From assembly GCA_038496445.1 (NCBI GenBank), contig JALMLS010000282.1:72318-136317 (forward strand): a DNA stretch of 64,000 nt, in the 5' to 3' direction. The translations under genes were made by a program, and so were the position numbers. Positions 4,964-43,615 of this stretch are shown piece after piece. This stretch comes from Trichosphaerium sp. ATCC 40318. Its lineage: Eukaryota > Protista > Tubulinea. The notes below the pieces were generated by a model, which searched no databases, had not been told where the DNA came from, and saw only the letters and a program-made list of their open reading frames with translations. Position 1 is the first letter of the stretch; the number at the start of each line of letters is the position of its first letter.

Positions 4964-5976
4964 TCACATTACAACGCAATTTGTCTTCTCTGTAGATTTA
5001 TCAACAATTCCTTTATGTTTCAACGCTGCTAGAGCTGCTTCATCGAATACTACACAAAAAAGAAAAGTAGGTTAGCACTCCGAGTGTAAGAACACTCATG
5101 ATACGTACCTTTCTTCATACCATCTTGAGTAAGAGCGCTACATTCCGCATAAGACACTGCCTTTGTAGAGATAATCAGTGCGATAAAAATAGTGAAAGTA
5201 GCTTACCCCTATTTTTTTTGCAACCTTTTCAGCTTCTTCTCGAGGTACACAATCGTATGGACTTCCATCACTTTTTGGTGTTGTTCTCAAATCCATTTTA
5301 AGACCTACAAGAACAATAGGTGTATCTGGACAATGGTGATGTACTTCAGGTTTCCACTACATGTGATTAGTTTTGTTGTTAAAGAAAGAACCTTGAAGCT
5401 TTAGGTGTACCTTGGAAACAACTTTTTGAAGACTAGATGGCGAAATGACGCTGAAGCATATTAGAAAAACATCAGTTTGCTAAAACAATCACATCAGAAC
5501 ACAAATAAACATAGCAACAAAAACTATCAAGTCTTACAGGATAGCTCAAAGGTCTCAATGTGTCATAATCATCACGACTTGCTGTATCAAATAAACCTTT
5601 CAAATGTGTCAACAATATTATGTAGAAGGAAAGAGCCAGCGAACCTAAGTGTACAGTCTTGCCTGCAACCGTCACATCAGTACTAAAAAACGTGTCAATT
5701 TTTTTTTTTGTGGATTTCTTGTTTTTCACAAATATCGAAGTCGCTTCAACCCCTAATTACCTGTAATTATCCTTCCCTGTATATACTAAGCGGTATAAGC
5801 ATCAACAAGGCTAATTAGGCCGTACCGTAATCTTGAGGGAATAAATTTGTTGTAACGCGTATAAGCAACTGTGTTTTGCCTTAGAAGGCAAGTATTAGCG
5901 CGAAATAACGACTTTTTGTCGTTTAGTACATACCAACTGCTACATCTCCGTTAACAACCACTTTGATATTATCCAT
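4964..5976 (-). CDS. Divergent Rac/Rho-family small GTPase, copy 1
   Basis: Spliced: [20 protein letters not shown]...[11 protein letters not shown]...[19 protein letters not shown]...GLKMDLR...ECSALTQ...TNCVVM*. P-loop, G4, G5 and CaaX present. Confidence 0.9.
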
Positions 5977-6119
5977 GGCGTATGTGATGTGTTATTGAAT
6001 GATTAACGGGATTTATGGATTAAGTGAGGTGCAACACAGAACCAAAATCCTAAAAATAGGCGAATAATGTAAAAGTAAACACAAAAAAAAGATAAACTTG
6101 TTGGATAGGAAAAATAACA

Positions 6120-6290
6120 TGTAGGATTTGACGCGTAATAACGCTATTTTGTGGTAGCGCTGAGCCTTATTTCGTGACAATTTACTAACATAGGTAGCCT
6201 TGTGCAACTCTGAAAGCTACACACCCTTGCCAAATTAAGATTTGTGGGAAAAGCACGTGTCTATGAAATCGTTAAGCTGCTAAGGTCATA
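6120..6290. mobile_element. Degenerate copy of the MITE at 22529
   Basis: GGATTTGACGCGTAATAACGCTATTTTG and CATAGGTAGCCTTGTGCAACTC align with 22539-22630. Confidence 0.55.
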
Positions 6291-6815
6291 TTTTTTAAAC
6301 ATGGTCACAAAAATCTACTTTATTTGTTTTTATTTCATAACAGACAAATATACGACGCACTAGTGGAACAAATATTAAAGGTGCTTATCCTTTTTGTCGT
6401 TTTGCGGAGGTAGGGTAGCGGAAACCAGCCCAGCTCTCTTTTCGGGTGATTAGTCTTTAAGGTAATGAACGTTTAAGTAGGAATTTTAGGGGATTTTCTC
6501 GCTGACGTCTCTACAGCCATGTTAGACTACCAATATTTTGTGAGTTGACAGTTTACAAAGGCCTTTCGAATAAATAGCAGCTTGATAAGTATCCATGTCC
6601 ATTTGATTAATACCGTGAACTGAATCTGTTCATTGATTGTAAGATTAAAAATCCTATGAAGTGTCTTCAACTTGCTTGTGTTCAATATGTGTGAGGTTCA
6701 TTAAAACAGGAATCTAATAAACGCATACTTGTATTTGAAGTTCAACAAAGTGTGCTAGTTTTAATTACTTTTGAACTAAAGTCACATTACTCCTTCACAC
6801 TTTAAAAACATGTTT

Positions 6816-7867
6816 TCACATTACAACGCATTTTGGCTTCTCTGTACATTTGTAAGCAACAAGCCCTCTATGTGCCAAGGCTGCTAGAATTGCTTCATCG
6901 AATACTATGCAAAAAAAGAAAAGTTAACACGTTTGATGTTGTTTTTGTAGAAGCCGAGTGTAAGAACACTCATGATATGTACCTTGGTTCAAACCATCTT
7001 GAGTAAGAGCGCTACATTCCACGTACGACATTGCCTTGGTAGAGATAATCAGCGAGTGAGATAAAAATAGTGAAAGTAACTTACCCCTATTTCTATAGCA
7101 ACCTTTTCAGCTTCTTCTCGAGGTACACAGTCGTATGGAGTTTTATCACTTTTAGTTGTTGTTCTCAGATCCGTTTGAAGACCTGCAAGAACTATAGGTG
7201 TATCTGGACAATGGTGATGTACTTCAGGTTTCCACTACATGTGATTAGTTTTATTGTTAAAGAAAGATCCTTGTAGCCTTAGGTGTACCTTCGAAACAAC
7301 ATTTTGAAGACCTGATGGCCAAGCAACGCTGAAGCATATTAGGAAAACATCAGTTTGCTAAAAAAAAATCACGTGAGAAGACAAATTGTTTCAACACAAA
7401 CAGGCGAAACATAGCAACAAAAATTACAGAAAATCTCAAAGATCTCAATGTATCAAAATCCATAGGACCTGGTGTATCCCATAAACCTTTTAAAAAGTTA
7501 AATAACAGTATGAGGTAAAGAAAGAGATAGCGAACTTAAATGTACTGGCTTGCTTGCAACCATCACATTAGCATTAGTGCTAAAAAACGTGTCAACATTT
7601 CTTATGGATATTTTTTTCTTCTAAAATACGCAAAGTCGCTTCAACCCCTTACCTGTAACTGCCAAACACTGTCGGTACTAAGCAGTATAAGCATCAATAA
7701 GGCTAGTTAGGCCGTACCGTATTCTGTAGGGAAAGAATTTAATGCATAGCTCATGAGCAAGCATGTTTTGCCTGAACAAACAATATTAGGGCGAAATAAC
7801 GACTCTTTGCTCTTTAGTTCATACCAACCGCTCCATCTCCAACAACAACAAGTTTGATATTCTGCAT
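6816..7867 (-). CDS. Divergent Rac/Rho-family small GTPase, copy 2 (tandem with copy 1)
   Basis: Spliced: [20 protein letters not shown]...[11 protein letters not shown]...[19 protein letters not shown]...GLQTDLR...ECSALTQ...PKCVVM*. Same intron positions as copy 1. Confidence 0.9.
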
Positions 7868-8351
7868 GGCGTATGTAATATGCTGTTGAGCAATTAACGT
7901 GTTTTATGTCCGGTTTAGCCTAAACCCAACTAAAAAAAAGTTAAATTTCTAGCTTATCAATTTTATTTTGAGTTGTTTAAGGTATGATAGGAAACGTTAT
8001 ACCTTCTTGACCTCGACAAGATGAGGAAACAAAATGGATAACTTACCACTTTTATCTAAACAGGAAACCAAGGTATTTAAAGTTTATTGTCGGTGTGCGT
8101 GATAGCTACATTGCTGATGGCTCATAGTTCTCAAAAGAAGTTACAGGCAAACATGTTTGTTTGGTTTTTTTTATTGAGTTATACTTTATCAAGGCACATA
8201 TAGTACACACAAGCTCCCCATGGAACCTGGGATATGTCCCTTGACAGGCAAACATGTTCACGTACTAGTAGTCAATGTCAGTCAGAAACGACTACAAGTT
8301 AAAAACACGTGGGTTCTAGCGGTTTATACTTTAACGCACCCATATTTAATT

Positions 8352-9365
8352 ATGACAACAAAGCATAGTACAAACAATGCAAAGGGGTTTAGTAATAAAT
8401 CTGACGGTTGCCACCTGTTACGCCTTCCCGTTGAGATTCAACTTGATATTATTGATTTAGAGGTATCATTGTATTTAATTTGGCCTCTTCTATCTAAAAC
8501 AAGCGCAATGATGACAAGATTCGATGAAGAGATGAAGAAACATGGAAAATGGCAAAGAAGAACATCTAACAACCAACTTGTAAGCTCTCAGTCGTATTCA
8601 CAGTAATCAAGTTTCTTCAATTCTATTTTGAACGTGGACCACTTTTTAATTTTATCTTAGACTCATGAACAACATTGGTCACATGGTAATATGCATGGAG
8701 AACAAAAAGAGTGGCACGATAATGGAAGTTTGTTTGAGACGTGTAACTATACTAATAGTAAACTTGAGGGAGAGTACAAGCGGTGGCACTTTAATGGTCA
8801 ATTGTGGTTACATCTTGTTTATGTCAATGATAAATTTGAAGGAGAGTACAAGGAGTGGCATGACAATGGCCAATTGAAACAGCGTTGCAGTTATGCAAAT
8901 GGTAAACGAGAAGGAGCATACAGGAGTTGGTATGACAGTGGCCAATTGAAAGAGTATTGTTGTTATGTCTTTGGCAATATTGAAGGAGAATACAAACAAT
9001 GGCATGATATTGGTCACTTCAAAGAGCGATGTACTTACGTAAAAGGTAATCCAATTGGAGAATACAAGCAATGGTATGAAGACGGCCAATTATGTAAGTG
9101 GATTAGATATATCAATGGCAGTCATGCTGAGTGTAATCTTGAAGCAGAGTATAAGATTTGGCATGACAATGGCCAAATGGCAGAGCACTTTTCTTATGTA
9201 AATGGTAAACGAGAAGGAGATTACAAGAAGTGGGGCTATACTGGCAAATTGTTATCACACTTCAATTTTGTCAATGGTACAGCTGAAGGACGGTGGGATA
9301 CTGGTGGTCAATATCACGTATTTGAGACACCTGAGATAGAGCCCAATAGGTGTTTGTTGATGTAA
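8352..9365 (+). CDS. F-box-like + MORN2-repeat protein with C-terminal CaaX
   Basis: Exon 1 has LLRLPVEIQLDIIDL. One intron (GTAAG at about 8580 to CTTAG at 8660). Then 24-aa GKxEGEYKxWxDNGQL repeats, ending NRCLLM*. Confidence 0.85.
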
Positions 9366-9677
9366 TTAAAGCTTCTTAAAAGTACTTGCTTGGATACGTT
9401 CAGAGAAGGAAGCCAAAGAATTGTTTATAAAACAGTGCAATACAAATAAATGTTTCAAGTTTTTAGTTAATGTTGTAAACCTCGTTGATTAAGAATTCTA
9501 ACAGGACATTGAAATTGACCCAAATTTACCATCAGAGGTAAGACTCACTTACAAAAAATCGCCCAAACAACGACATTAAGTTCAACTCTGACTCCGCCTT
9601 AATTAGTCACTTACTGTAGCTAACAAGTACACCTGGTGCCCTCAAAAATATCTACAACGTGTTGATACTATTTAATT

Positions 9678-10940
9678 ATGACAACGAAGCATAGTACAAA
9701 CAATGCAAAGGGGTTTAGTAATAAATCTGACAGTTGTTACCTATTACGCCTTCCCGTTGAGATTCAACTTGATATTATTGATTTAGAGGTATCATTGTAT
9801 TTAATTTGGCCTCTTCTATCTAAAACAAGCGCAATGATGACAAGATTCGATGAAGAGATTAAGAAGCATGGAAAATGGCAAAGATGGAGACACGTGACAC
9901 TAGAAAACCGTATTATACTCGTAAGTGATGGCTTTTTATAAAAACGACCTAAAAACCAATTGTAACGTTTGTGTTAAATTATTATTCTTCGGTGAAGCAC
10001 CTTTAACATCTAAACTGACTTTTTTTTGAAGCCATTTTTAATCGCACAGTAGGTTCACGAACAACATTGGTCAAATGGTAAGAAACATGGAGAACAAAAA
10101 GAGTGGCACGATAATGGAAACTTGATGGATAAAAGTAATTACGTCAATAATGAACTTGAAGGAGAGCGCAAGCGATGGTTTGAAAATGGCCAATTATGGG
10201 TTCAGTCCATTTATCTCAATGGTAAACTTGAAGGAGAGTACAAGGTGTGGTATCAAAATGGCCAATTGAGCCACCACTGTACCTATGTCAATGATAAACT
10301 TGAAGGGAAGTGCAAAAAGTGGAAAGAAAACGGAAAACTGAACACTGAAAATAATTATGTCAATGATATTCTTGAAGGAGAGTACAAGGTTTGGTTTACA
10401 GAAAACGGCGAACAAAAGCTATTGGATAATATCAATTACTATGTTAGTGGTAAACGACACGGAGAGTATAAGAGATGGTATATCAATGGTCAATTGTACA
10501 TCCACTGCAACTATGCCAATGGTAAACGACAAGGAGAGTACAAGCAGTGGCATGCTAATGGCCAATTGCGTGAGCACAGTAATTATATCAGTGATACACT
10601 AGAAGGAGAGTACACAGAGTGGGATAGAGAAGGCCAATTGATACAGCACTGCTATTACGTAAATGGTAATGATTCAGGCCGCCGTAGTGTACTAGATGGA
10701 GAGTTCAAGCAGTGGTACAACGGTTGCCAATTAAAAAAGCAGTGCACTTATGTAAATGGTAAACTTGAAGGAGAGTACAGGGAGTGGGGTTATAATAGCC
10801 AATTGATACAGCATAGCACTTATGTAAATGATAAACTTGAAGGAGAGCACAAGGAGTGGAATAGTGATGGCCAATTGATACAGCACAACACTTACGCCAA
10901 TGGTACAGTTAAAGAAGAAAACAGGTGTTTACTGATGTAG
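9678..10940 (+). CDS. F-box-like + MORN2-repeat protein with C-terminal CaaX (tandem paralog)
   Basis: Exon 1 is nearly identical to that of 8352. Intron about 9921-10051. About 11 MORN2 repeats, ending NRCLLM*. Confidence 0.85.
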
Positions 10941-11764
10941 TGAAGCTACTAGAACCACGTGAAAGTGTACTTGTTGTTGGAGGTGTTCAGGAACCCAAAG
11001 ATGTTTTCAATGAACAGTGCAAACAGCAAGTAATTTGCTGGCTAGAAAACTAACTCGTAGCTCAATCTTTAGTAGTGTCCTACAAGTAAATTAATCCTTT
11101 ACGTGTTAATATGTTTAACTTCATCCTATTAAATCCCATCCACCCTTGTTAATGTGCATGCCTCATGTAGTGTCTGGCTAAGCCTAGTCAACTAAGCAAA
11201 CAAGCAAGCCAATGCAAAAAAGTCAAAGACTGTACAAGTCAATAAACAATACAAAGTACAAATAGCGAAATGGTGTACATGCTAAAATACCAACGCATAA
11301 CTGATGAAGAAGTCAGCTTTTTTTTTTCATCCAAATAAAATTCGTTTGATTTCTCCATGCTAGAAGTGAGGTGAAGTATCAAAAAAACTAAACTGATTTC
11401 ATCCTTCAATCTAATATCGCTCTATTTAGGATGTTGTAAACCAAGCTTACACCGTTAAAAACCGTTGAATTTCACGTGTTTTTTTTTTGTTAATTTCTTA
11501 ACTAGTCTCAAGTTAAGCCAATTATCAGCTAGTACCTATCATCCGTCACCGTTGCAACATAATAGTAGGTACGTAGATAATAAACTTGTTTTAAAACAGT
11601 TGTGATGTTAGAATTATTATACGTATTTGTTCGTGCACTCCTGCGGTGCTTACGCGTAGTGTGACGATATGGGTGCACTTTTTATCGAATTACGTCATGT
11701 TCCGTCAGAAAAGCGCGTAGGTGATTCAAACAACTCACATGAGTAGGACAATACTGTATTGCAC

Positions 11765-13801
11765 ATGGAAACTGAGACTCTGAGCAGCGTGCGAGTAAAC
11801 AGAGGAGCTGATTCCCTTGAAACAGAACCGTTACGGCAAAGTACGCAAAAAAGAGTTACAGGAGTAGTGATAGGACTCTTACGCAGAAATAGTTAGCCGG
11901 CTGCAAGATTGGTCTACGGACGATGTGGAGCAGTGGTTTATCAACGAAGGCTACCCTAGCCTTGCTAAAAAGTTTAAGAAGCATAGTATAAACGGAAGTG
12001 ACCTCTCAGAGCTAAGTACTGAAGATTTGAAAGAAATAGGCGTAAAAACAATTGGTCAACGTCGTAAGATAATGAGGAAAGTGAATCAAGTACTTTTAGA
12101 AGACAAAAAAGGTACACAAACGAAGAAAATCACAAACAAATCGACCTTTTTTATTTCTCGCTGAATGACGTTTTGTCACGCTTTAGTTCATTAAATCTCT
12201 TTTTAATCATATTAGAGGAGAACACAGATGATCAAGACACAATTGAGCTTGCTACAGAGGCATTTAAACTACTACCAGATATCAAAAGAGGACCAAGACA
12301 AGCTGTTGTTGGATTTCTTTTTCATGCTGAAGAGTTCTTAGATTCTCCTATTTGGAAGCAATTCGTTTTAGCTTTTTCTGGTGGTGCTTATATTGCTTTT
12401 GGTGCTGCTCTTTCTATTGTACTATCAGCGGGTGTTGGTATGTATACCGAAGTTTTTTTTTTTGAAGCTGCTAAAAGTCGAAACTTTTTCTTTTTTTGTT
12501 GTTACAACTTTTTGACTCGCTTTCAGAGACACCTGGTCCAAAACGTTTCTTGACTTCTCTTGGATTCATTGCTGGATTCTCAATGGTTATACTTACTGGT
12601 TCCGCGTTATTCACAGAGGTACGGGTCGTGTATATTGAGTTTTTCTTCTAATATCAATATGCAGATAAATGTGCTAATTCCTGATATGATTTTGCTTCGA
12701 TTACGGACCTACAGACTTATTTGTCGCAAATGCTTCAGATTTTGGGCTTTGGTATATGTAGGGAATATTATAGGAGCTTTAACAGTAACATTCCTTCTTT
12801 GGTTAACGAGTACTTTAACTAAAGATTCGCTTGATAGATTGGATGACATTGTTTTTGAAAAAATGAAATACTCGGACAAGGTACAACAACAGCCTTCTGA
12901 ATTTTATGTGTACCCTTCTGCTTTACTTCATGGTCTATCATAATATTTTTTTAAAGCCACTATAATTGACCTAACCTTTTTTTTTAGCCAACTGTTGGAA
13001 GTTGGTTCTTGGTTTTAATTTCTGGTATTCTTGGAAATTGGCTTGTTGGTGTTGCTGCGTTACTTGCACAAACAGCAAGAACATTGATATCTAAAGTTAT
13101 TGCTGTATTTTTTCCAGTCATGACATTTGTTTCATTGGGTGTTGCACATGCACCAGCAAATATGGGTACGCCAAATGTTGAAAAAACAAAAAATCACGTT
13201 TTATTTCCTTACCTCAATCCTACCCTTGTCGTACGCGTCAGATTTTAAGTATAATCGAAAATGAGTCGTATATAAATCGAGAAAGGTTTCACAAAGGCTC
13301 ATGATCACATAGTGTTGATGTAGCTCGAAAACTCTCAAAACTTATTTTTTTCCAACTTTTTTTGTATTTTATTCTTTTGATGCTTTTGGAAATTAGTCAC
13401 GTGATCGCTGTGTCAAAAAATAACACGTGATGGTTTGACTAATAATTGTATTTTTAGGATACCTATTCTTGGGATTGATGGAAGGTAAAGGAAAGACATC
13501 AGTACTTAAAGTCATTGTGTGGAATCTTTGTACGTTAACTTGGAGAACATATTCAAGCTCGGAAAAATATTTTTCCGCAAAAAAGGTACTTATTTTTATA
13601 TTTAGTGCCGTCATCCATCGGAAATCTCCTAGGAGGTATGATTATGGTTGGTTTATTCTACTGGGTTGTTTTTGCACCTCCAAAAAGACAGCTAAGGTCA
13701 ACATTCCCACATTTGTTTAAAAAGCCTCACGTACGCCTTAAAATAGTAATCTAAGCGTAAGTAACCATGTCTGACGCTAAATAGAAGAAAAACAACAAGT
13801 A
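11765..13801 (+). CDS. SAM domain + formate/nitrite transporter (FNT) family channel
   Basis: SAM: WSTDDVEQWF...LSTEDLKEIGVKTIGQRRKI. FNT motifs: GGAYIAFG, GSALFT, VYVGNIIGA, GILGNWLV, HAPANM, GNLLGG. Both termini approximate. Confidence 0.8.
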
Positions 13802-14971
13802 GCACCTAAAACGGCGACAAGTGAAAAAATCTTCCCAATATGTAATCTCTACGCATAGAAACTATGTTTAAAGAACTTAGACATAGTTCTGTTACTGTTA
13901 AAGAAGGGACAAACAACAAATGGAAAAAAAAAACAGAAATCGACAAGAAACGTAAGGGTTATGTCTATCACTTGTAACATACTACAATACATTCCTTTTT
14001 AAAAAGTACCGAAAAACGTCACAGCTGTTCAAAAAAGGCCAATTTCTGGTTTTGAAAACGCGTATTTTCGAGATTTATAACAACGTACGCATTACTCTCA
14101 ATATACCGCTTTCCTTACCACTTTGTAGATTGCTTATGAGAAAGATTTGTCTTTTTTTTTTCGAAACTACTGCGTAGTCAATAGTGAAAAATAGGGAAAA
14201 CAGTATATTCTGTCTTAAAACCTTCACTGGTATACATTCCTACGCGAATTCTTGATAACCAATTTCGGCCAAGACCTTGAAAATGCAGGAAGACCCTTGC
14301 ACATGGAAGTACTATAGTGTGTTATCCCTATGCTGTGACTCTGAAAGTCACATACGCGTACTGATCATGTATTCAGTGATGTTCGTTGACAAGGCTTTGT
14401 CGTTTGTTTTAGTGTTGTCTAAAGGTCAAAAGATCCATTGACATAGTAGAGAATGTTGTGCAAATATAATAATGTCGCATTTGACGCGTAGCGTAATTAT
14501 ACTTACACAACATTCTCTTATACTGAAGAATGCAACGCGTAGACATTAAAGTCTTACGTGCTACCTACTTTTAGCAGTCATTGTTACCCTTTTCGACAAT
14601 GCATAAGACTTTTCTATGAGGTGCTGCGTACGTATCACTGAAGAGTTTTGAATAATTTATTCAAATTTTCGTATCATGTTCTGTGAAGCCTCCCAATGAA
14701 GTATTTTAGGCAAAGGTACTACCATATTGCAGACATTTGATTAATGACGTTGTACCCGTACAAGTTTAAAGCGTTACTCATCCTACGCTGCAACTTTGAA
14801 TTCACTACAAATGGACTGGTGTTTATGCTCTTGAGAGTGGTGTTTTGTTGTATTGTGAGCGTATGTGCTTGTCCACTTGAAGATTGTATTAATTTATATT
14901 GCTCGTTTTTGTCGTTGACGGTCAAACAGCTTTCTCGTGAAATCTCGATAATACTCGCAAAACCTCACGCA

Positions 14972-17900
14972 ATGCAACCACAAGGATACGGTCCACCTGG
15001 AGGTTACCCTCCACAACCTGGTTACGGCCAACCACCAGTAAACCAACAAAATCAACAACCTCCTCTACCACCATACCAAGGAGATGCTCCTCAACGCTTT
15101 GGTAGCTTTCCTGGACCTGCGCCGGGTGAAAACGGTCCACCGCCACCAGGCCAACCTACACAGGGCTATCCACCACAAGGACAACCAGCGTACGGTCAAC
15201 CGCCACCAGGACAACAACAACAAGGTTACCCACCGCAAGGGCAACCAGCCCCTCCACAAGGCAGACCAATGGCGGGCGGACCACCACAGGGAGCTTTTAG
15301 AGGAGAACTAACAGCAAAGTTAAATAACATGTCGCTATCAAACCAACAAGGTCCACCAGTAGGGAAGCCAAAACCTGGTGTTGGCTTTAAACGTGGCGGT
15401 AATGTTACCCGACAACAAGGTTCTGGCGGTGCAGTACACTCTTTCAGCGAGTCCGAACGACGTGCTTTCGTTGAGCACATCAATTCGGTTTTAGAGGGCA
15501 AAAAGGGCGCAATTAACATAGACCCGAACTCAGACGCTGTTTTTGAAACGATGAAGGACGGTGTACTCCTTTGGTACGTTAATCAACCAATTTTTTTTTC
15601 GTTTCTACAAATAACTGGTTGCTTCCAACCGAATTTCTTCCAAAAAATGATTTACTAGCAAACTACATACTTTATACGTTCTATTTTAATGTGTATTGTG
15701 TTTTTTTTTTTTTGCGTTAAAAACGCTTTGTTTTGCGTTAAACAATTACTTACGTGCTTTATTAGTAATCTATTGAACGCTTTAAGACCTTCTACAATAA
15801 AAGAATCAAGTATTAATCAAAAACCGAAAAGCAAGTTTCAAGCTTTGGAGAATATAAGTATGGCACTCAATGCTTGTAAGGATTTGGGTATGAGATTAGT
15901 TAATATTGGTGCTGTGGATATTCATGAGGGCACTGTACGTGGAGACCCAAGATACCCGAAATTTTTTTTTTTTTCCTATATTTCAGCGCTCATACGCAAT
16001 TACATCCAACAAGCATTCGCCTTGTATTTTTTTTACATCTTTGGGTAATGTTAGAGTGGAGAAAAGACGCTTTTTTTTTATATTTTTCTTGGGTGTTTTT
16101 TAAGTTTTGTCGAGTTTGCTTGGCTTCTATGGAGCCTTTTTTGTGTAGTTTTATTTTTCGTGTTGCGTGCTTATAGATTTTTATAGAAACATCTTGTTTT
16201 GGGTCTATTGTGGCAGATTATTAAGGTACCATCTTCGTTTTTTATTTTTTTAGTTTGGTGAAAAACACAGTCGACGCACTGTTGTATGGCGCGTGTATTG
16301 ACCTATATGTAGTGGGGATTATTAAATGGACTCAATGTTGGTGATCATCCAGAACTTGTAGCTCTTATGCAAAATGATGAGGACTTGAACCAATTTCTTA
16401 ACTTGACACCAGAGGTAAAAATGAGCGAAAAAGAGCTGCTATAGTTTTTTTATTGTTTTGTAAATTACGTACTAATCTGATTAATAATTAGGCGTCACTA
16501 TTGAGATGGTTCAATTATCATTTAAAGCGTGCTGGACATCCTAGACAAGTTAAAAACTTTACAGGCGATATTAAAGACGCTGAGAATTATTTGGTTCTTC
16601 TTGAACAAATAGCACCTCAAATTGTACCAAAAGGTTGTCACAACGAACCAGATGAGAATAATCGTGCTGCTTGGGTATTGCACTATGCCGATCAACTGGG
16701 TTGTAAAAAGTTTTTGCATGATCCATCAGACATTCTAAAGGTATGTAACATTCGTGCCTGTACGAAAAGCTAATTGTTTTTGAAGCCAAATCCAAAGTTG
16801 AATTTGGCTTTCACAGCGAACTTGTTCAACAAACATCCTGGCCTACAAGCAGATAACTTTGACCAAGAACAACAAAAAGCAGTCGATGAAGCTAGAAAAA
16901 GAGCAGAGGCAAAATTTGCAGAAGAAGAAAGGTACAGCAAATTATATGAGCTAACTAGCTGTTTTTGCTTCTTTGCAGATTTTTTGCGTGAATTTCCACT
17001 TCTTCAACATGTATTGCTTCCGTAGCTCAGTTGGTTAGAGCGCACGACTGTTAATCGTGAGGTCGTAGGTTCGACCCCTACCGGGAGCGCTTAAATCTTT
17101 TCATTTTTTTTGACCTTTTCGGTTGTACTAAGATGCCACAGACTACGAAACGAACGATGGAAGAGAGAAGAAGAACAACAAAAGCGTCGTTTAGCGGAAA
17201 TGGAGAATAACATGTAAGCACGACATTGTCTTTTTTTTTTCTCTGATTTCTCGTTAGGAAAAATAGCCTTGCTGCACGCGAAGCAGAGCATAATGCTCGT
17301 ATGCAACAAGAAGCTCAGAGAAAAGCTGAAGAAGAAGCGTACCGTAATCAACAAATGCAACTCGCAGACCAAAATCGTGCTGCTCAGATGACTGCTGCTG
17401 ATCAAGCACGCAGAGCACAAATTGACGCTGAAGAAAGGGTACATAACGTGGTTACTATTGAGTTGGTTTTAATGCATTGTTAGGCCATACAACAACGTAG
17501 ATGGGAAGAAGAGCAAGCGCATAGGCGACGAATGGAAGAAGAAGGCAGAAGACATCAACAACAGATGCAGCAACAACAGCACATGCAGACAATGCAGCAA
17601 CAACAAGTATGATTCTTTTAATCTTTTAGTTACTTTCGTACCGTCTGTTTTTACTAACTACCTTTAACAGTGGCAGAGACAGCAACAGCAACAACAACAA
17701 CAACGTGTTACAACTGTGCGTAGTTAAACATCTTCTACGCGACGACTACAAATCCTTATTTTAATACTAGACAACTACTACTCAGTTCAGACCACCTCCA
17801 CCACGAACTACTACTGTTGTACATCAAAGAATATTCGCTATTGCTTGTTGGAGTTGTAAACGTCAATTTCAAGCCCAACCTGGTATTCCTCGTATCGCTT

Positions 17901-32180: not shown

Positions 32181-32284
32181 TAGCATAGAACCGACCAAAT
32201 AATGTACACATTCATTGTACAGAATAGTAAGCAAGACTTTGTGTACAGTCCACAAGTTACTAATAATAACTTACGAACACTGAG

Positions 32285-32918: not shown

Positions 32919-34653
32919 CTAAAGATTGCCATTTCTCTTTGCTTTTGTGACCTTGATACGTTCCATCAAGATGAATCCAAGTTCTTTCAACACTTCTTGA
33001 TCAATTTCATTGACTTGAATGGCGAGTTCATTCATCAATGATCCAAGTTCTTGTGCTCGCTCACTTGAGATACCCAACCCTTTCAATACTGACACCCAAT
33101 CAGTTTCATTGTTTTGAATCGGTATTGGTGTTGTTGGAGCAACTGAAGGGATGGTTGATTTGGTATCACGTGGTTGAGTGAATGTTGGCTAAATAACAGT
33201 CAAGTTAAAGAAACTTGAAACTGAAATAATACATACCTTGGTGTCAACAGAAACGTTGGGTTCCTCAATCCACGACTTGTTGGTTACATCATGTGACAAT
33301 AAAACGGGGTTACTTGGTTCACTACTAGCCTATGAACTTGTTAGGAATGTATTTTGTTATTTTTTGGTACATCATTTAATATGTCTTTTTGGTTCTGTAT
33401 TTCAAGAGCATCTTTAATCATATTGACATGCTCTGAGGCGTCTCCAAACTTGGTGTAACTTTTTTGAATGTTTACACCATCAAACGACAAGTGTGTGTGG
33501 GTCTTGTTTCAACTCTTTGCGTATCTCTTCTAAAGTGTTCTTTTGAGGTTGGATTACCTAAAAACAAGCAGTTTGCATATATTGACAATAAATGATTGAG
33601 TACCTTCCTGTGGTTACTGAATGACAATTGTTGTGGCGAAGATTCTCCATAATCATTATCACCACCTGTAACCAATCTGAAATCATGAGATATTGCCAAG
33701 TAATGCCATCGTTTATTGGCAAACTCAAGATATTTTCCAGGTAATTTTAATGGTTTGTTTGATTTGAACGAATCAATCCATTTCCCTCTACCCCAAGCAA
33801 ACAACCAACCTTCATCATCAATCGCAAATGATGAATGACCACCAGCATGGACAGATATGATGTTATTCAGTCCTTTGATGATACCTTGGCCACACTTGCC
33901 ATTAATACCCAATCCAAGACACCCATAGTAGAGGTTGCATCCAAAAGAAAATACTTGTCCTGACTTGAGGAGAACAAGTACATGCCAATAACCAATGGCA
34001 ATATCAGTGGCATCTTCAATGTTTGGAACACGTGAAATTGTCTGTAGATTCAAGAACAATGCTTTATCTACTGCTTCATCAAGTGTTGTTCCCCAAAGAA
34101 AGACATGACCTGTTGATGTCATTGCTCCACTTACATGAGAATTAGTTTGAATTTTTTGAACATTTTGAAGATTTGGAATAAGCACTGGTGATGAAACTTT
34201 CTTCTTGTCGAATGAATGACCCAATCCATGACATGAGTTATCTCCCCAAGAGTAGACATGACCTGAATGTGATAACGCCATACTCACACTACCGGCAGTG
34301 ACTTTCGTGATATTATTGAGATTTGAAACACGTGTTGGTGACGAAATAGGTGACTTGAAGTGACCCAGACCCAATTCACCGAATGTATTACAGCCCCATG
34401 CATACACAATACCATTCGAATCAACTGCAACGCTATGTTGATATCCAGCAGCAATACAGACGATATTTACAAGTGACTTTATTGGTCTTGCGATAGAACT
34501 CTTTTTTTTGCCTGTATTACCCAATTGGCGGTTATCGTTTTGCCCCCATGTGTAAACAAAGCCATCGTCTGCGATTACCATTGAATGTCCATCACCAATG
34601 GCCAAGCGGTTAACATATTGTAAATTAATGTCTAAAGTTTGAGTTTCTGCCAT
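32919..34653 (-). CDS. RCC1/BLIP-II propeller + SAM-like domain, copy B (4 exons; apparent frameshift in exon 2)
   Basis: The 393-aa ORF covers the propeller. Linker exons and the SAM-like exon (ends RNGNL*) are homologous to the other copies. Confidence 0.85.
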
Positions 34654-35020
34654 TCACGTGTTAGTTTTAATGTTATTCACGTGTGTTTGCCCAGACGAAT
34701 ACTGTGTTTCGAACAGTATCCCAATTTTAGGGGGGCCATAGTTTTTTCCGAATTTTCCGAAAACAAAAATTCGAAAAAATAGAATTCGTAGAAAGATGCA
34801 TAGCTAGGGCAGTCACTAAACTACAAAGCTTTTTGGTTGTCACGTGCGAACATTTACTGAGCAGATAAGTTAACACTTTTTACTTTGGGTTTCAACAAAT
34901 ACTCAACATTGACCAGTGGAGCACGTTTTTCCCCCTGTTAAGCGTTCGCCTTCCCATTCTCATGACTGTGGTTTGTTAGTACATTAAACTACTAGTAGCG
35001 GCCTAAAACGCTCAACCAAC

Positions 35021-38000
35021 ATGCTGAAACTACGGAAACAACGGGTTATAGCTCGCATTGAGTCGTACATGCGAATTTAGTATATTTCCTCCTAAATGGA
35101 CGTAAACGTTGCTTTTGACGCGTTTCCACGCTTGCAGAATTGTTTTAACGACAAATGTTGACTTTTGATTTAAGCTCCGAGGTTATTGGCGCTAATTCTG
35201 GCATCACCACTCTATGGCGCTACCTGTCGCGTTTTCATTATTAAGTAAAGCATATTACGTTTGTAAATGAGCAAACGACTGTCTGCAAAGAAAGACACAT
35301 CTAAAAAAGAGAACGGAGACCTCCAAAAGGTACATAATGCGTAGTAAAGATATATACCGCACGCCTGCTTGTCATAAAACAAAACAATAACGTTTTTGAC
35401 TTTAGATCCTTGACGATGAACGAAATACAGCAAAAGAGTTGTTCAATAAGATTTCTTCGCATGTTAGCGCATCTAAAGGTGCTCTAAATGACCTTTTTGA
35501 TTTTTTTTCTTTCTTTGTCGTTAACGCCAAATATAGCGAGTGTAGACACTGGTAAGGATCTAGCGAAGTATCTTCTAGGTTCGTAACGACATTTTGTTCT
35601 TTTAAAGAAAACAATCACAATCGGTTTCAGATATCTCGCCATACAGCTAGAATATTAATATCTGAGCGTCCGTGATAGCTCCTGTTTGTTTTTAAAATTA
35701 TTGGGCTACAAAATAGAAGATTAAAAAGATTTTGGTTTAGTTTTTATTAAAGGTTGAAGAGCTGTGCATTTTAACCGATTCCTTAGAGCTTGGTAATACC
35801 GGAGAAGATTTAAATAAAGAGTATGGTACGTAAATAGTTTCTCACCACGTGTTTTTTGTAAATTCACGTGTAAATCGGCGAACAACAACGCTTTGTGAGA
35901 TTTAGTTGTTTTTTTTTTTGAAAGCTTGAAACGGCCAATTCTATTATTCAGTTCCTAACTTGCTTATCAAGGTGAGGCATTAAAACTTGTCGGAGCATTA
36001 CAACTACTTGTGCAAGACTTGAATTTACATATTGTACGGCTATTATAGCACAACGGCGACTTATTAGAATAACATTTTTGCAATTCTTGAACGAAAATCT
36101 AAGTATTTTTTTTTAGTTGAATACCATGGAAACTCAAGTAATGTCACCAGTAAAGCAATACACACAATCGTTAAAGGAACTAAGCTCGCATTTAAAAAAG
36201 CAAGAACAACCGACTCATACAGTTAACAGCTTTTTGAGCAGAGGTAACAGTTTTTTTTTCCGACTTTTTCTTTTATTGCAAACCTCAACATTTGTTTCTT
36301 TGGTGCTTCACCACTGGTTTATTATGATTTGCTTTATCCTTAACTCTTTCTTTAAAGCTAAGATGGAGCAGTTAACAAAATTCTACACTCTGGTTATGAG
36401 CTACAAACAGTTTTACGCGTGTGGACTAGAAAAAATGAATGAAGATGTTTTGCCTGAATTAAAAAGTTACAATGATATCGCCACTCTTATGCTAGGTTCG
36501 AATCAGCTTTCTTTGTATTATTACTCTTAATATGTATTTTTAAGGTGATTCTAGATACCTGGCAGAAAAAGCAAAAACCGAAGCACCTGCGGCGCCTGTA
36601 GCTGTTAAAGCTAAAAGACGTCTTTCTTTAAATATCACATCAAAACGAAACTCTATAAAACTCTCTGGTGTATCAGCATATGCTGGTGGATCTGATAGTG
36701 AAAGTGGTGCTATAGCTTCACCTGGTGTTCAGCCACGTGCGTCTAGACGTGCGATATAAAAACAAACGCAGCATAGAAAGAAAAAAATTATGATGTTTAT
36801 TTTTTGTTTTCTTCTAGGACTTGTTGCAAGACGACAGACTACCAAGAGGCGCTCTAAAAGATCGAGAAGACTTTCTCAATCGCCGGTATTTATTTATTTA
36901 ATTGATAAAACCCTTTTATTTAATGTGTGTTTGTCAGGTTGGTATTGTATTTGGAAGGAGTTTGGAGGAAGTTTGTCTCAGAGAAAATCGAAACGTGCCT
37001 CGATTTTTACAAGGAGCTATTGAGCAATTAGAAACTCATTTTGATACCATTGGTTTATTTCGTATTGGAGGATATAAACCAGAAGTTAAAATGTTGAGAC
37101 AGTTAATTGATAGCGGTGTACGCTGATTGAAACGCTTTTTGACAAAAAATTGATATTCTGGGAGTTTCACTTTTCTATGTACTGATCTGTTGTTAGGTAT
37201 ACTGCTATGATGACCTCAAGAGTCCTCATGTAATTTGTATATGTATCAAAGAATTTTTACGAGAAATGGCTGATGCGCCGTTATTACCAGTGGAGCTATT
37301 CGATAAGTTTGGCAATATTTGTACGGGCTGATAAATGAGAATTTTCTGAGATATTTTTCTTCATTCAGAAGCACCCTGGCTTATTCTATTTGTAGTGGGT
37401 TTACATCAACATAATCGCATTGATATGTTTAGACAGTTAATATCAAATACACCATACCATGTTCAAGGAACACTTGGATACTTGTTGATCTTTGCACAGT
37501 GCGTTTTTTAATTTCCTGGTTTTTTCCTTTTTTATTCTCGGTTTATTGATGCCTATCAGGCGAATGGCTCAATCTGCTGAAGTTCATAAAATGACTGCAG
37601 CGAACATAGCTTCTCTGTTAGCGCCGAATATACTTTATAGTAATGAACCAACTAATGTTGCACATGTAACAATGGCAAACAATATTATCACTTATTTTAT
37701 TGAAAACGCCCACGAAATATTCAACAAGGTGCGCTATCACCCATGAAAGATTATCATGTTCTTGGTTTCTACGACAAATATTGTTCTTACTAACTTGTAA
37801 AACTCTACTACAGGTAAACTTAAGTATGCCGCTATTTATCTCGCCGATTGATAAACAACACTTTCCGGCTTCTTTTGTTAACAAAGAAGAACAGTGGAAA
37901 TCAATTGGTCTTCTTTCAAATGATGTTTCTGAGCGTGAAAGACTTATTTGTGCATTGACAGTTATTAATTGCAAGCAAGTGCGTACTGGATGGGTGCTTG

Positions 38001-38683
38001 TTGGGTACAATGATTCAGGAGATATTGCTTTGCAATCTTATCGTGCTTTTGGAAAAGGAGATGAAGAAGTTTGTATTAAGTCTCTTTCTCAGTCTTTAGA
38101 GGATAAACAGGTTCAATATGCATTAGTAAGGTATGTTTGTTATTAGTTATATTCGAAACTATATCACGTGCTTAACACGTGTTTTTTTATTCCACCCAAA
38201 TGGCGGGTTTTTCATTGCGAACCAAAAAAAAACAAAAATTCTGGCTCCGATTCGTTTTTTTGAACCATTGTTACTTGTATAATCATATCCAAAGTTATGG
38301 TATAAAAGCGCTTTTATAGAAGTATTCTAATCCATAAACTTTGGATGTGCTAGTTATTTTAAAGAGCGAAAACTGAAGAAAATTTGATGTTGGTTTTTTT
38401 TTACCGTTGATGTTCATTTCTTGTGTTTAGGATACCTATACCTAGTAATGATAAGTCGCCAGCTAAATCTACGAGTCAAAAACAACAGGATATTTTTGTT
38501 CAGTGGTATGGTAGTGGTGTTGGGATAATGGAAAAAGCGAAAAAGAGATCACATCATAGCGAGTTACAGCAAATTTTGAATCCTTATCATTATGAGGTGT
38601 ATGTCGTTTCTAGAGTCAATTTCACGCTTGAAAATTTATTGAAAGCAGCACGTCCAGGATCAGGAACACATGTTATTGATTAG
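35021..38683 (+). CDS. RhoGAP protein with C-terminal ADF-H (coactosin-like) domain; start approximate
   Basis: FGRSLEEV...VPRFL...GLFRIGG (arginine finger), KEFLREM..PLL, HKMTAANIASLLAPNIL. ADF-H: GWVLVGY...QYALVRI...IFVQWYGSGVGIMEKAK. Confidence 0.85.
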
Positions 38684-38999
38684 AAGAACAGACATATAGA
38701 CCAAAGCTGTTAAACAAAAAAAGAAGAAAAAAAAGTGTAAATATCAAAGAAATTTTTTTGTGAGTGTTGTAGAGCTCAATTTGTATTCCTTGTGTGGTTA
38801 TGATCCACTTAGATCATAGAAACTTAAGTTCAGGTTGTACTTTTGGTAACTGGAGCTGGCGTTAACAAGACAAACAAGCATATCATTATCTTAGCGTCGA
38901 AGAATATGTCTCGAAGGTTTTGTGGAAAATATGAGATAATTGAACTTACAATTTTCTTTATTCTCTATTCTAATGTTGCAAACAAATTCACTATTGCCG

Positions 39000-39430
39000 C
39001 TAAAGATTGCCATTTCTCTTTGCTTTTGTGACCTTGATACGTTCCACCAAGTTGAATCCAAGTTCTTTCAACACTTCTTGATCAATTTCATTGACTTGAA
39101 TGGCGAGTTCATTCATCAATGATCCAAGTTCTTGTGCTCGCTCACTTGCGATACCCAACCTTGTCAACACTGACACCCAATCAGTTCCATTGTTTTGAAC
39201 CGGTATTGATGTTGTTGGAGCAACTGAACGGATGGTTGATTTGGTATCACGTGGTTGAGTGAATGTTGGCTAAATAACAGTTAGTGTAAAGAAACTTTGA
39301 AACTGAAATAATACATACCTTGGCGTCAACAACAGAAACGTTGGGTTTCTCAAACCACGACTTGTTGGAAACCAGTGGCCAAGCAGTTAACATATTGTAA
39401 ATTGATGTCTAAAGTCTGAGGTTCTGCCAT
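39000..39430 (-). pseudogene. Internally deleted RCC1-SAM paralog, copy E
   Basis: MAEPQTLDINLQYVNCLATGFQ is fused out of frame to exon 3 at CCAACA. The SAM-like exon is intact and near-identical to that of copy B. Confidence 0.85.
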
Positions 39431-40391
39431 TATTGTGTGTTTAGGTCGTTAGAGATATTCACAAATTTTTTGCACATTTCAATGTCGGCAATGAAACTCA
39501 AGCAAGTATTTTATCAGGTGGGTATGTACATGTACACGCAACATAAACCAAAGAAAGCGTCAAAGAGCTGAAGAAAATAAAAAAGATACGTTTGGCAATA
39601 AAAACTACATGTAAACACATTCAACGCATTTATAATACTCTCTAACGTGTTTGAGAAACTTCTGTTCACAAAAAACCACCAGAGCAGATTTATCTTTCTT
39701 CGCTAACAGCTCTACCCTACAATAAAACGGCAACCCTCGTGTTCAATCGTGACTTCGTAACTATTTCTCCGACAAGCTGATGCCAACCCGAAGGTACGCA
39801 TATACCATACTTGCGCCACACAAAAGCGCTCACGGCAACACGGCAATAATATCACAAAACCAAGAAAGGCATTGCCAAACACAACCAACATTACTATAAA
39901 GCGACACGCCACCACAAGCAGGTGCACTTAAAAATGTAACAAAGCAAAGTATTTGGTTTTACAAAAATCACGTGTATAAATAAAAACGGTTCGTAACAAA
40001 CAATTACTCCCTCACATGCTATTACTACAAAGTTTTTGAAAAATCCGCATTGAAAATGAAGGCCTCGCTTTCCTGGAATGGAATCAAACGTTGAGATAGT
40101 TCTTGGGCTTGAAGAATGTTGGAAGCGCTAGTGAGGATCGACGCGTATGAACTTCATGTACTTACGGCGTGTGTATACTCAGTGACATTTCCACCATACT
40201 CAGTGTAAAGGATTGAAAGAAGCTCAAAACCGGATGTCAGGTATACTGTTGAGCTGAGTTGGTGACAGGAGCTTATACTCTAAACCAGGAAATCTACGAA
40301 AGTTAGATATTTGAGCTAGCTTCAGTTTCTAACTCATAGTAACTACTTAGTTTTTGCTGAGTGGAAATACATCTTGTTATGAAGGTTTTCA

Positions 40392-42257
40392 ATGTGGCGA
40401 AGATGGTTTGCTTTGAGATATTTTTTTATATGTTTGGAGTGTTTACTCATCTTCCTGTGCGCGTTCGCGCGAAAACAGAAAGTTTACAACACTTTCTGTT
40501 TTCGCACAATGCATGATAGACTATGACGTACAAAGATGCTGAATAAAGTTTGAACTGTACAATTTAGTACTACCTTTGAGTGTGCGCTTGGTGAAACATG
40601 TACAGATATCTACAAGTTTTTCCGCTGCACTGTGAGTCACACTCGTTGTGGAGTCACAAATGTTCCAAATTGAGTATAAAACTTTTTTCTTTGTTTGACT
40701 AATTACCAGATTTGGTTTGACGAATTGGAAAACACATCCTCGGCCTTGTATAATTATTCTGGTATTTAAACCTACCCTGTTAATTTGGTGCGTATGAACA
40801 TGAAAACGGACTTCCAACTGTTTTTTTTTATGAAGCTCAAGTCTCATCTATTTAGGCTCTTGAACCTAAACCTGACGCCAAAGCAAAACGAAACGCACTT
40901 TCGTACAAAATGTCCCTTTTCTTGTGGTCCCTTTTTCTGCTGTTTACATACACGGAGCGTATTGTTAGTCAACAATTTGATATCGCCCTAGATTTCGTTA
41001 ATGCGAGCAATAACTGCTCTCAAATGCACGTGATTTTTCTTTTACAAAAGATTTCGCTCTAAACAGAGTCGTAGAGGTCAGATGCTATTAGAAATACGTA
41101 CTGAAAATGAATTCAAGCATTATAAAACTATGGCGAATATTCACGGTAACTTTTGGCTCAATGCGCGTCGTAATGATTCCACAAGTTACACAAAGGTGAC
41201 CTGCGACCTTTGTCGTTTATCAGGGCAAGAATGTGATAGGTGTCGTGTGGCACTATCTACATACACGTGGCTGAGTGATCAAACCTCTATTTTAGATACT
41301 GACTTGTTTCTTATTGGTGCTGGTGGGGATGTACAAACATTTCTTTTGAAATTTTTCAAAAACGAGCCTTCATTTGTTGATTCACAGAATAATCAAGAGA
41401 GATGTGTACATATGCGTAAAGACGGTTTGTTAATATTAAAGAACTATACAGGCAATAATTTTGTTAAGGTTTCAATGATGTCAAATGTAGTGGTAAATCG
41501 CAGCTACAAGTTGTGTGCATGAACAATACGCAGGTATCCCAGCCTTCAGCTACACCGACAGCTACGCCAATAGTTCCCACTCCACAGATTTGTCCAAACT
41601 GTAGCGCTCGACTTAATGACACAGTGACCGTTGGTGGCATTTTTTCTATTTCTGGAACAATTTATGTAACTTCAGGTAAATATTTTCTGTTTGCTGGTGA
41701 CCAGCTGTAACAATCGGTAGGTGATATTGTGTTTCTAAAGAATTCAGTGGTTGTTGTTGATTCAAATTCTTCACTGTCAATAGGAGGCTGTCCTACTTTT
41801 GAGGAAAATGTTGTTATTGATACAACTGCAGTACAAGTACAATGTTCATCTTTAATGTTGTGGTTATTTTCTAACGTATGTAAAGCAAAAAGGATCATTG
41901 ATCTTGATTAGCTACAGTGACGATTGCATTGTTGACTTGACAAACATTTCACTCTCAGATCCAGCAAACACGTGCTTTCAACAAAGTATGTCATATTTCT
42001 TCAGAGATCAATCATACAATCATGTCTGGTTTTCACACTTAGTTTTCTGTATAGATACACGTGGCAAGTTAGTCATTTTGTTTTCTTCATCTTGTTTCGA
42101 TCAAGATGGCAGCGAGACTGATTTTCCTATGATACCTGTAGTTGTCATAGTAGTGCTTGTGGTATTTCTTGTCATTCTTGTTTTGGTATTGACTTTAGGC
42201 ATACCCTCATGGCGTGAACGCATTTATCCGCATAGATGGGTTTCCCCAAAAGGTTAA
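40392..42257 (+). CDS. Type I membrane protein with C-type lectin domain; start approximate
   Basis: F.NA...C, LLEIRTENE, FWLNA, YTWLSD, ERCVHM, FNDVKC...VVC. Then a P/T linker and the TM helix IPVVVIVVLVVFLVILVLVLTLGI. Confidence 0.7.
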
Positions 42258-42546
42258 AAAAGAACACTAGAAAGTTTAAAACTAGGGTAGTGTAATGTTA
42301 GTTCAAAAAAATTAAAAATAGTTTCTCTTACTTACACCGTTGTTCAACGTCAAAAAAATATCTTTATCAGATCCTACTAATACGTGACGCATAGGATTCA
42401 AATTGAAGAAGAAATAAGGTTCGCAAAGTGTGAATTCAAGTCAAAATAAAATTGATAAGACACAGAAATTTGACTGTTTTTTAGAGGTGTTTAGGCTAAA
42501 GCCATTCATAAAACACTTTAATCACTCTAAGTACATCATATACGCC

Positions 42547-43615
42547 ATGCAGAATATCAAACTTGTTGTTATCGGAGATGGAGCAGTTGGTATGTACAAA
42601 ACAGCAAAGAGTAGTTATTTCTCCCTAATACTCGTTTATTCAGGCAAAACAAGCTTGCTTATATGCTATACAACAAATTCTTTCCCTACGGAATACGGTA
42701 CGGCCAAGCTAGCGTTAATAATGCTTATACCGCTTAGTACCGACAATTTTTGACAATTACAGGTTTGGGAAAAAAAGAAATCCACAAAAAGTTTTACACC
42801 ATTTTTTTTAGTGCTAATGTGATGTTTGCAAGCAAGCCAGTACATCTAGGTTAGCTATATCTCTTTCTTTATACCATCATACTATTTATTGACACTTTTG
42901 TAAAAGGGTTATGGGATACAACAAGTGCTGAGGATTTTGACAGATTCAGACCTATGGGCTACCCTGTAAGACTTAGTACATTTGTTGTTGAGTAACAATT
43001 TTTCTGAAATGTTTCGTTTGTTTCTTGTACAATATTTTCTTCTCACGTGATTTTTTTTTTAGCAAACTGATGTTTTTCTCATATGCTTCAGCGTTGTTTC
43101 ACCAGTAAGTCTTCAGAATATAGTTTCCAAGGTACGCCTAAAGCTAAAAGGATATTTTTGTTTGTTTTAGCTGGTATATTTTTAGTGAAACAATTAATCA
43201 CGTGTAGTGGAAACCTGAAGTACAACACCATTGTCCAGATACACCTATTATTCTCGCAGGTCTTAAAATGGATTTGAGAACAACACCTAGAATTGATGGA
43301 ACTCCATACGACTGCGTACCTCGAGAAGAGGCTGAAAATGTTGCAAAAAAAATAGGGGTAAACTACTTCCACTATTTTTATATCTCACTCGCTGATTATC
43401 TCTACAAAGGCAATGTCTTACGTGGAATGTAGCGCTCTTACTCAAGATGGTTTGAAGCAAGGTACATATCATGAGTGTTCTTAAACTCAGCTTCTACATA
43501 AAAGCAATAAAGGGTGCTAACGCTCTTTGTAGCATTCGAAGAAGCAGCTATAGCAGCATTAACACATAGGCGAAGTTTTACATCTACAGAGAAAACAAAC
43601 TGCGTTGTAATGTAA
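42547..43615 (+). CDS. Divergent Rac/Rho-family small GTPase, copy 3
   Basis: Spliced: [20 protein letters not shown]...[11 protein letters not shown]...[19 protein letters not shown]...GLKMDLR...ECSALTQ...TNCVVM*. Confidence 0.9.

Follow-up and report, generated by a model that had tools for sequence, protein, structure and literature searches.

Rac-like genes lacking the catalytic glutamine form an expanded, putatively non-hydrolyzing subfamily in the amoeba Trichosphaerium

It is chiefly in animals that 'atypical' Rho GTPases deficient in hydrolysis have been described, among them Rnd, RhoH and RhoBTB. In the animal Rnd proteins, substitutions at the positions corresponding to residues 12, 59 and 61 abolish GTPase activity, and the methionine of the CAAX box leads to farnesylation (PMC6696182). 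RhoH, RhoBTB and the Dictyostelium Racs RacI-Q, the last of these poorly studied, are further Rho paralogs that are confined to particular lineages and do not follow the classical GTPase cycle (PMC8305917). Here we describe three Rac-like genes, copies 1 to 3, in a 64,000-nucleotide (nt) stretch of Trichosphaerium sp. ATCC 40318 DNA, hereafter the window (assembly GCA_038496445.1, contig JALMLS010000282.1, positions 72,318 to 136,317 of the forward strand). Trichosphaerium sp. is a marine tubulinean amoeba, and a solution comparable to the animal one appears to have evolved independently and to have expanded to about 20 genes in this little-studied organism. We favor, with moderate confidence, the reading that the three copies are Rnd-like, non-hydrolyzing, membrane-anchored Rac derivatives and young paralogs within this Trichosphaerium subfamily.

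The three loci were located by a motif scan and six-frame translation of the window, and exon models were read from the DNA and then checked by script. In agreement with the initial annotation of this DNA, which had proposed three intact Rac paralogs, each copy has nine exons with the same intron positions and phases in all three (exon lengths 43, 54, 25, 38 [44 in copy 2], 59, 69, 150, 52 and 83-89 nt; Table 1). All 24 introns are GT-AG and 40-97 nt long, every ATG start, stop codon and splice dinucleotide (48 in total) is intact, and there are no internal stops. Each protein ends in CVVM, a C-terminal CaaX prenylation box, followed by the stop. Further, copy 1 was rebuilt exactly from the copy 3 protein by an independent, custom spliced protein-to-DNA aligner. 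Copies 1 and 2 lie in tandem on the same strand, with copy 2 placed 840 nt upstream.

Table 1. Positions in the window of the three Rac-like genes, their exons and the exons that carry the switch and guanine-specificity motifs
Feature	Position	Strand	Remarks
Copy 1, Rac-like gene, tail CVVM	4964-5976	-	9 exons, 191 aa
Copy 1 exons	5934-5976, 5826-5879, 5761-5785, 5645-5682, 5538-5596, 5411-5479, 5207-5356, 5109-5160, 4964-5049	-	
Copy 1 exon 3, 25-nt micro-exon encoding switch I	5761-5785	-	
Copy 1 exon 5, switch II	5538-5596	-	
Copy 1 exon 7, NKxD motif (LKMD) and Rho-insert-replacing loop	5207-5356	-	Pfam Ras 25.0 bits
Copy 2, Rac-like gene, tail CVVM	6816-7867	-	9 exons, 194 aa
Copy 2 exons	7825-7867, 7718-7771, 7653-7677, 7536-7579, 7428-7486, 7289-7357, 7085-7234, 6983-7034, 6816-6904	-	
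Copy 2 exon 5, switch II	7428-7486	-	
Copy 2 exon 7, LQTD and Rho-insert-replacing loop	7085-7234	-	Pfam Ras 16.9 bits, under cutoff
Copy 3, Rac-like gene, tail CVVM	42547-43615	+	9 exons, 190 aa
Copy 3 exons	42547-42589, 42644-42697, 42738-42762, 42812-42849, 42907-42965, 43063-43131, 43208-43357, 43410-43461, 43533-43615	+	
Copy 3 exon 5, switch II	42907-42965	+	
Copy 3 exon 7, LKMD and Rho-insert-replacing loop	43208-43357	+	Pfam Ras 22.2 bits

Around the coding regions, about 65 nt before each ATG are conserved among the three copies (5977-6045 and 7868-7935 on the minus strand, 42480-42546 on the plus strand), and this leader is preceded by a T-run and AG that resemble a splice acceptor. 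Judging from this arrangement, the copies may have a non-coding first exon and an intron in the 5' untranslated region. A fourth CVVM, at 38791, is a chance match within an unrelated reading frame. Contig L002 (G000:C426:1-1930) is 99% identical to window positions 42928-44857, which comprise the 3' part of copy 3 and its flank. The single coding difference is at switch II residue 64 (Y vs F), 10 nt from the contig end, and L002 is probably an uncollapsed haplotype of the copy 3 region.

Residue numbers follow human Rac1, to which the exon of an amoeba canonical Rac aligns over residues 36-96, including DTAGQEDYDRLRPLSYP. After exon joining, the P-loop, switch I and switch II strings quoted in the initial annotation were all found in the predicted proteins. 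The P-loop (G1, GxxxxGK[ST], spanning the exon 1/2 junction) reads GDVAVGKT in copy 1, a natural G12V, and GDGAVGKT in copies 2 and 3. As had been reported for this DNA, none of the copies has the catalytic glutamine: where Rac1 and the amoeba canonical Rac have DTAGQE as their G3 motif, DTAGQ is replaced by DTASR in copy 1, DTPGP in copy 2 and DTTSA in copy 3, such that no copy has Q61 and only copy 2 keeps G60. Relative to canonical Rac, copy 1 carries V9N, G12V, P34Y, V36G, F37K, G60S and R at position 61, and copy 2 carries D38G, N39S, G54S, A59P, P at position 61 and K116Q, together with a two-residue insertion in beta2. Copy 3 has a canonical P-loop and switch I (YVPTIFDNY) and a switch II with A59T, G60S and A at position 61. 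Y32 and T35 (the G2 residue of switch I) are retained in all three, with the residues flanking T35 altered in copies 1 and 2. In G4 ([NT]KxD), the lysine and aspartate are kept in copies 1 and 3 (LKMD) and the lysine is lost in copy 2 (LQTD), while G5 reads ECSAL throughout. Since Q61 is absent from all three copies, with G12V in copy 1 and G60S in copies 1 and 3, these proteins should be poor GTP hydrolyzers.

The protein and profile searches used single exons as queries. Among solved structures, exon 7 matches Rac1 best, followed by Rac2, RhoG, Rac3 and Cdc42, and on its own it scores above the 21.6-bit cutoff of the Pfam Ras profile (PF00071) in two of the three copies (Table 1). Like Rac1, the window genes have a collinear G-domain with the same N-terminal numbering and a CaaX tail. 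The exon 7 alignment ends at Rac1 residue 121, the start of the Rho insert, a helix of about 13 residues between beta5 and alpha4 in Rho proteins. In the window genes this region is four residues shorter, Pro/Gly-rich and unalignable to Rac1. Also unlike Rac1 and canonical Racs, they lack Q61, have LKxD for TKxD, end in CxxM rather than CxxL, contain nine exons instead of three to five and have a degenerate switch II. These data support the view that copies 1-3 are real, intact, atypical Racs.

The resemblance to Rnd1/2/3 lies in changes at position 61 (all three copies), 59 (copies 2 and 3) and 12 (copy 1), along with the CVVM tail. By analogy with the Rnd proteins, the copies may also be regulated by means other than guanine nucleotide exchange factors (GEFs) or GTPase-activating proteins (GAPs). 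However, the two groups are not orthologous, as the amoeba genes nest among amoeba Rac-like genes in a tree built from loci of this genome. The amoeba clade also lacks the N- and C-terminal extensions of Rnd, has mostly proline at position 61 and counts about 20 members against three. The window genes would likewise share with RhoH, RhoBTB and RacI-Q the status of lineage-restricted paralogs departing from the classical cycle, but those proteins have other domain contexts and motif changes.

The window is part of contig C171 of a 70.3-Mb Trichosphaerium sp. assembly, and we searched the whole genome (reported as 70.87 Mb, with a GC content of 37.7% and a mean intron of 75 bp; PMC10521059) with exon 7. 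This search returned 77 matches, from which 70 loci were fetched and modeled individually by the spliced aligner; distant paralogs were modeled from one query protein and their small exons may be imprecise. In the Rho-family tree of 59 models, which the initial annotation had called for, copies 1-3 fall in a 20-row clade with a Shimodaira-Hasegawa-like approximate likelihood ratio test (SH-aLRT) support of 100. Common traits of the clade are the nine-exon structure, GLKxD for GTKxD, the CxxM tail and, replacing the Rho insert, a shortened loop that is conserved within the clade (consensus DLRTt.k.DGspyDC). Canonical-type Racs in the same tree have DTAGQE, TKxD, the full insert, three to five exons and CxxL tails where the C-terminus was recovered. 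One intron, K96|W97 (phase 0), is common to the nine-exon subfamily, the window genes included, and to the canonical three- to four-exon Racs L030, L029 and L028, and the remaining subfamily introns appear to be gains or cases of differential retention.

Q61 occurs in 0 of the 20 clade rows. Eight rows (seven distinct genes, with the near-identical L005 and L006 counted as one) have P at position 61, and the remaining rows have R, A, G, S or T there. Because DTAGPEDYDRLRPLSYP (the DTAGPEDY type) is found on both sides of the basal split of the clade, in L005/L006 and L007 on one side and in L012 and L013 on the other, parsimony makes DTAGPEDY, and with it Q61P, the most likely ancestral switch II. 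By this reconstruction the missing Q61 is an old family trait and not peculiar to copies 1-3. The earlier description of the copies as hydrolysis-deficient atypical Racs thus stands as a prediction from their motifs (no Q61, G12V, G60S), but the loss of Q61 does not single them out within their clade. The clade also shows repeated replacement of G12, with V, P, D, I or T in its place, and two related loci with imperfect models, L019 and L041, have R and E there. K16, T/S17, D57, K116 and D118 are kept in almost all clade members, as are GK[ST], T35 and SAL.

Relative to the canonical-type Racs of this genome, the subfamily is less conserved in switch II (0.72 versus 0.87) and in the P-loop (0.84 versus 0.93) and more conserved in the loop replacing the insert (0.68 versus 0.44) and in residues 97-114. 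This conserved loop is a candidate for a family-specific partner-binding surface. Our HMMER search with an exon 7 profile against 1.84 billion representative proteins revealed many Rho proteins, the best at 93 bits summed over three stretches, with the subfamily signature in none of them, and the exon 6/7 junction pattern had 0 matches in metagenome contigs. A word-index search with exon 7, which admitted proteins of 27-87 aa, likewise returned no match. None of this organism's spliced proteins appeared among the HMMER matches, and within the reach of these libraries the subfamily is, by its signature, lineage-specific. A published survey of amoebozoan Rho GTPases covered 12 species, with Tubulinea not among them (PMC8305917).

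Three further sets of loci from the genome search deserve mention. L011 (G000:C92:220335-223484), a close paralog of L010, has exons 5-6 (switch II and beta4) missing or degenerate with stops in the gap and is a probable pseudogene of the subfamily. L063 (G000:C163:107276-110353) carries a second, independent natural G12V (GDVAVGKT) and a degenerate switch II, D-ISREETDRTRPITYP; it has three exons, its sister is the fully canonical Rac L029, and both TKLD and a CIIL tail are retained. Finally, another well-supported Rac-like group consists of L025, L027, L042, L044/L045 and L059/L070 (contigs C139, C99, C376 and C348). Position 61 in this group is P (S in L042), as for instance in DTAGPEEYDRLRPLSY, with the motif further degraded in L044/L045. 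TKLD is kept, the models start with 'LPGVK' without a Met and end in '...GDGTEE' without a CaaX box, and these are probably domains of larger proteins.

Neutral decay, which the initial annotation had named as the alternative to its own reading, was checked against the introns and is ruled out by the indel spectrum. Between copies, introns trimmed of their splice signals differ at 21-29% of aligned positions and carry 9-11 indel events per ~350 nt, 78-91% of which have lengths not divisible by three. The coding sequences, which differ at 15-17% of positions, show just 1-2 indels per pair, each a multiple of three in length, versus 14-17 expected at the intron rate (P ≤ 6e−5). Given these few in-frame exon indels, the intact starts, stops and splice sites and the conserved leader, the reading frames are being kept, even at places where the amino acids themselves are free to vary.

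Selection differs between the two halves of the genes. Pairwise Nei-Gojobori estimates of the ratio of nonsynonymous to synonymous divergence (dN/dS, or omega) are 0.71-1.32 in the N-terminal half (dS 0.24-0.26) and 0.38-0.61 in the C-terminal half (dS 0.19-0.27), with dN among copies of 0.17-0.35 and 0.10-0.13, respectively. The conserved C-terminal half described in the initial annotation is therefore real, but its conservation is relative only. The two halves of the tandem pair also have distinct histories: the C-half tree pairs copies 1 and 2, with a short copy 1 branch, and the N-half tree does not, while introns 5-8 of these copies are ~90% identical and introns 1-4 ~78%. The intron identity and C-half pairing suggest that gene conversion has affected the 3' parts of this tandem pair, and one could ask if the contrast between halves comes from homogenization of the 3' halves rather than from selection. 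We regard this as very improbable. Conversion would apply to the tandem pair only, dS is alike in both halves for the other pairs (0.24-0.27), the dN contrast is ~3-fold against a dS contrast of ~1.4-fold, and intron identity between copies 2 and 3 does not differ from one half to the other. As the sole cause of the contrast, conversion is ruled out by the similar dS of the halves in two of the three pairs.

Codon models were fitted to nine clade members with our own GY94-F3x4 likelihood code, which matches the IQ-TREE log-likelihood exactly (-3119.554); with nine sequences of 75-199 codons, the power of these tests is modest. The one-ratio model M0 gave an omega of 0.33, and switch II, averaged across the nine genes, does not evolve fast (omega 0.33). 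For the switch regions on the three window branches, omega was 1.12 versus 0.22 in the background, a value not different from 1 (p = 0.65), and the rest of the protein had 0.49 versus 0.28. The acceleration of the switches is thus lineage-specific. By copy, the switch-region omega is ~1 on copies 1 and 2 and ~0.3-0.4 on copy 3. Over the whole gene, copy 3 evolves at the family's normal rate (omega 0.31, below 1 with p = 0.002) and copy 2 at 0.63, not significantly different from 1. The C-half is under purifying selection in copy 2 (omega 0.38, p = 0.03) and copy 3 (0.22, p = 0.001), and the copy 1 branch of this half is too short to judge. An apparent omega of 3.95 for the copy 1 N-half (p = 0.006), obtained with shared branch lengths, is an artefact of the different histories of the two halves and fell to 1.46 (p = 0.47) when each half was given its own tree and branch lengths. 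Pervasive diversifying selection was unsupported among the nine clade members (M2a vs M1a p = 0.06), and the candidate sites of M2a, 2% of the total, are positions 18, 30 and the C-terminal hypervariable region, with none in switch II. The diversifying selection proposed in the initial annotation is not borne out by these values. Rather, the pattern fits proteins that are still preserved intact but whose switch half is under relaxed constraint.

We propose the following scenario for the subfamily. An early ancestor would have lost the catalytic glutamine (Q61P), with TKxD changing to LKxD, a shorter conserved loop (DLRTT.K.DG.PYDC) taking the place of the Rho-insert helix and the gain of a CxxM tail, which predicts farnesylation. 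Since GK[ST], T35, D57, K116/D118 and SAL are kept in almost all members, the proteins would be expected to still bind guanine nucleotide, to hydrolyze GTP poorly and not to cycle. They may act at membranes as adaptors that are permanently 'on' or insensitive to nucleotide state and that are controlled through their abundance instead of GEFs and GAPs, which would be a Rnd-like mode reached independently. With catalysis gone, G12, A59, G60 and the GAP- and effector-facing switch residues would have been freed from constraint, and such a release predicts the repeated replacement of G12 and the switch omega of ~1 in several young paralogs. The G12V of copy 1 would then be a consequence of the earlier catalytic loss and not an independent 'activating' change. 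Ordinary purifying selection acts on copy 3; the half of copies 1 and 2 that bears the switches drifts at an omega of ~1, with frame and splice sites kept in both and the C-half kept in copy 2. It is possible that copy 2, through K116Q, and copies 1 and 3, through G60S, are moving toward state-insensitive or weakly nucleotide-binding pseudo-GTPases.

Several points weigh against this scenario. With G60S or K116Q, the GTP-dependent conformational change, or even nucleotide binding itself, could be lost. Q61P in Ras reportedly impairs hydrolysis without conferring transforming activity, and 'permanently on' may therefore not equal 'signaling-competent'. The whole-gene omega of copy 1 is 1.7, indistinguishable from 1. 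Further, branch-site model A applied to the copy 1 N-half gave twice the log-likelihood difference (2dlnL) of 20.2 with an omega2 of ~46 and candidate sites at positions 6, 18, 23, 34, 37, 50 and 56, which, if real, would speak for adaptation and not relaxation.

The omega of copy 1, like that of copy 2, would also be expected if copy 1 and perhaps copy 2 were recently inactivated, unprocessed pseudogenes that have not yet acquired a stop or frameshift, leaving only copy 3 functional. In line with this, copy 1 has 26 private replacements versus 4 private synonymous changes, core motif residues are altered in both (copy 1 has G12V and G60S, copy 2 has K116Q and G54S), and L011, without its exons 5-6, indicates that the subfamily does yield pseudogenes. 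Nevertheless, we consider recent inactivation doubtful, as the 16 splice sites, ATG, stop and CaaX box are intact in each copy, exon indels are exclusively in-frame next to introns where most are out of frame, the C-half of copy 2 is under purifying selection, GK[ST], T35 and D57 are kept and the ~65-nt leader is conserved in all three copies.

The branch-site result would instead be expected if positive selection had remodeled switch I and II, either as decoy or escape from Rho-targeting bacterial or giant-virus effectors or for new partners. Consistent with such adaptive diversification, the same model was significant for the set of copy 1, copy 2, L004 and L008 (2dlnL 5.5, p ~0.01), the paralogs L004 and L008 show parallel switch-region divergence, and N-half dN exceeds dS between copies 1 and 2 (0.35 vs 0.26). 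Most of the favored codons differ by two or three base changes; within copy 1's 25-nt exon 3, for instance, P34Y and F37K required three base changes each beside an upstream intron that is 92% identical to that of copy 2. Multi-nucleotide codon changes are, however, a known source of false positives in branch-site tests, so the copy 1 signal is not secure and is a lead rather than a result. Adaptive diversification of the switches appears unlikely to us: the switch omega of the three copies does not exceed 1, the M2a test falls short with its candidate sites outside switch II, the elevated copy 1 N-half omega disappears with separate trees, the 3' halves of copies 1 and 2 sharing a more recent history, and Q61 had already been lost in the common ancestor of the 20 genes. 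In addition, Y32 and T35, the usual targets of known toxins, are retained in the three copies and the analysis found no link to a pathogen, leaving the decoy or toxin-escape role suggested in the initial annotation unsupported. A more specific version, in which young paralogs (copy 1, L004 and L008) undergo adaptive bursts on the effector face as farnesylated, dead-Rac decoys or sensors at the membrane for effectors that target Rho and come from prey bacteria or from the giant viruses that contributed many genes to this genome, is in our estimation a long shot. If true, it would represent an innate-immunity-like use of pseudo-GTPases in a protist.

Returning to the Rnd-like reading, the amoeba family combines the loss of Q61, secondary loss of G12, A59 or G60, a farnesyl-type tail and a new conserved loop in place of the Rho insert. 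Its members form a natural series from near-canonical proteins (DTAGPE) to heavily degraded switch regions, which can be used to ask what the Rac fold does after cycling stops and how pseudo-GTPases arise. As it stands, the pattern looks like relaxed constraint rather than a demonstrated arms race.

Two neighbors of copy 3 were also observed in the window. About 4 kb upstream, at 36902-38680 on the plus strand, lies a gene with RhoGAP and cofilin/ADF-H domains. The RhoGAP domain was recognized in three collinear exon pieces (profile positions 1-41, 50-83 and 118-147), including the GLFRIGG arginine-finger motif, and the ADF-H domain scored 28.8 bits, making a predicted GAP fused to an actin-binding module a curious neighbor for a putative non-hydrolyzing Rac. 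Just upstream of copy 3, at 41034-42254 on the plus strand, are two open frames of 162 and 133 aa without Pfam matches, the second of which contains a hydrophobic, transmembrane-like stretch.

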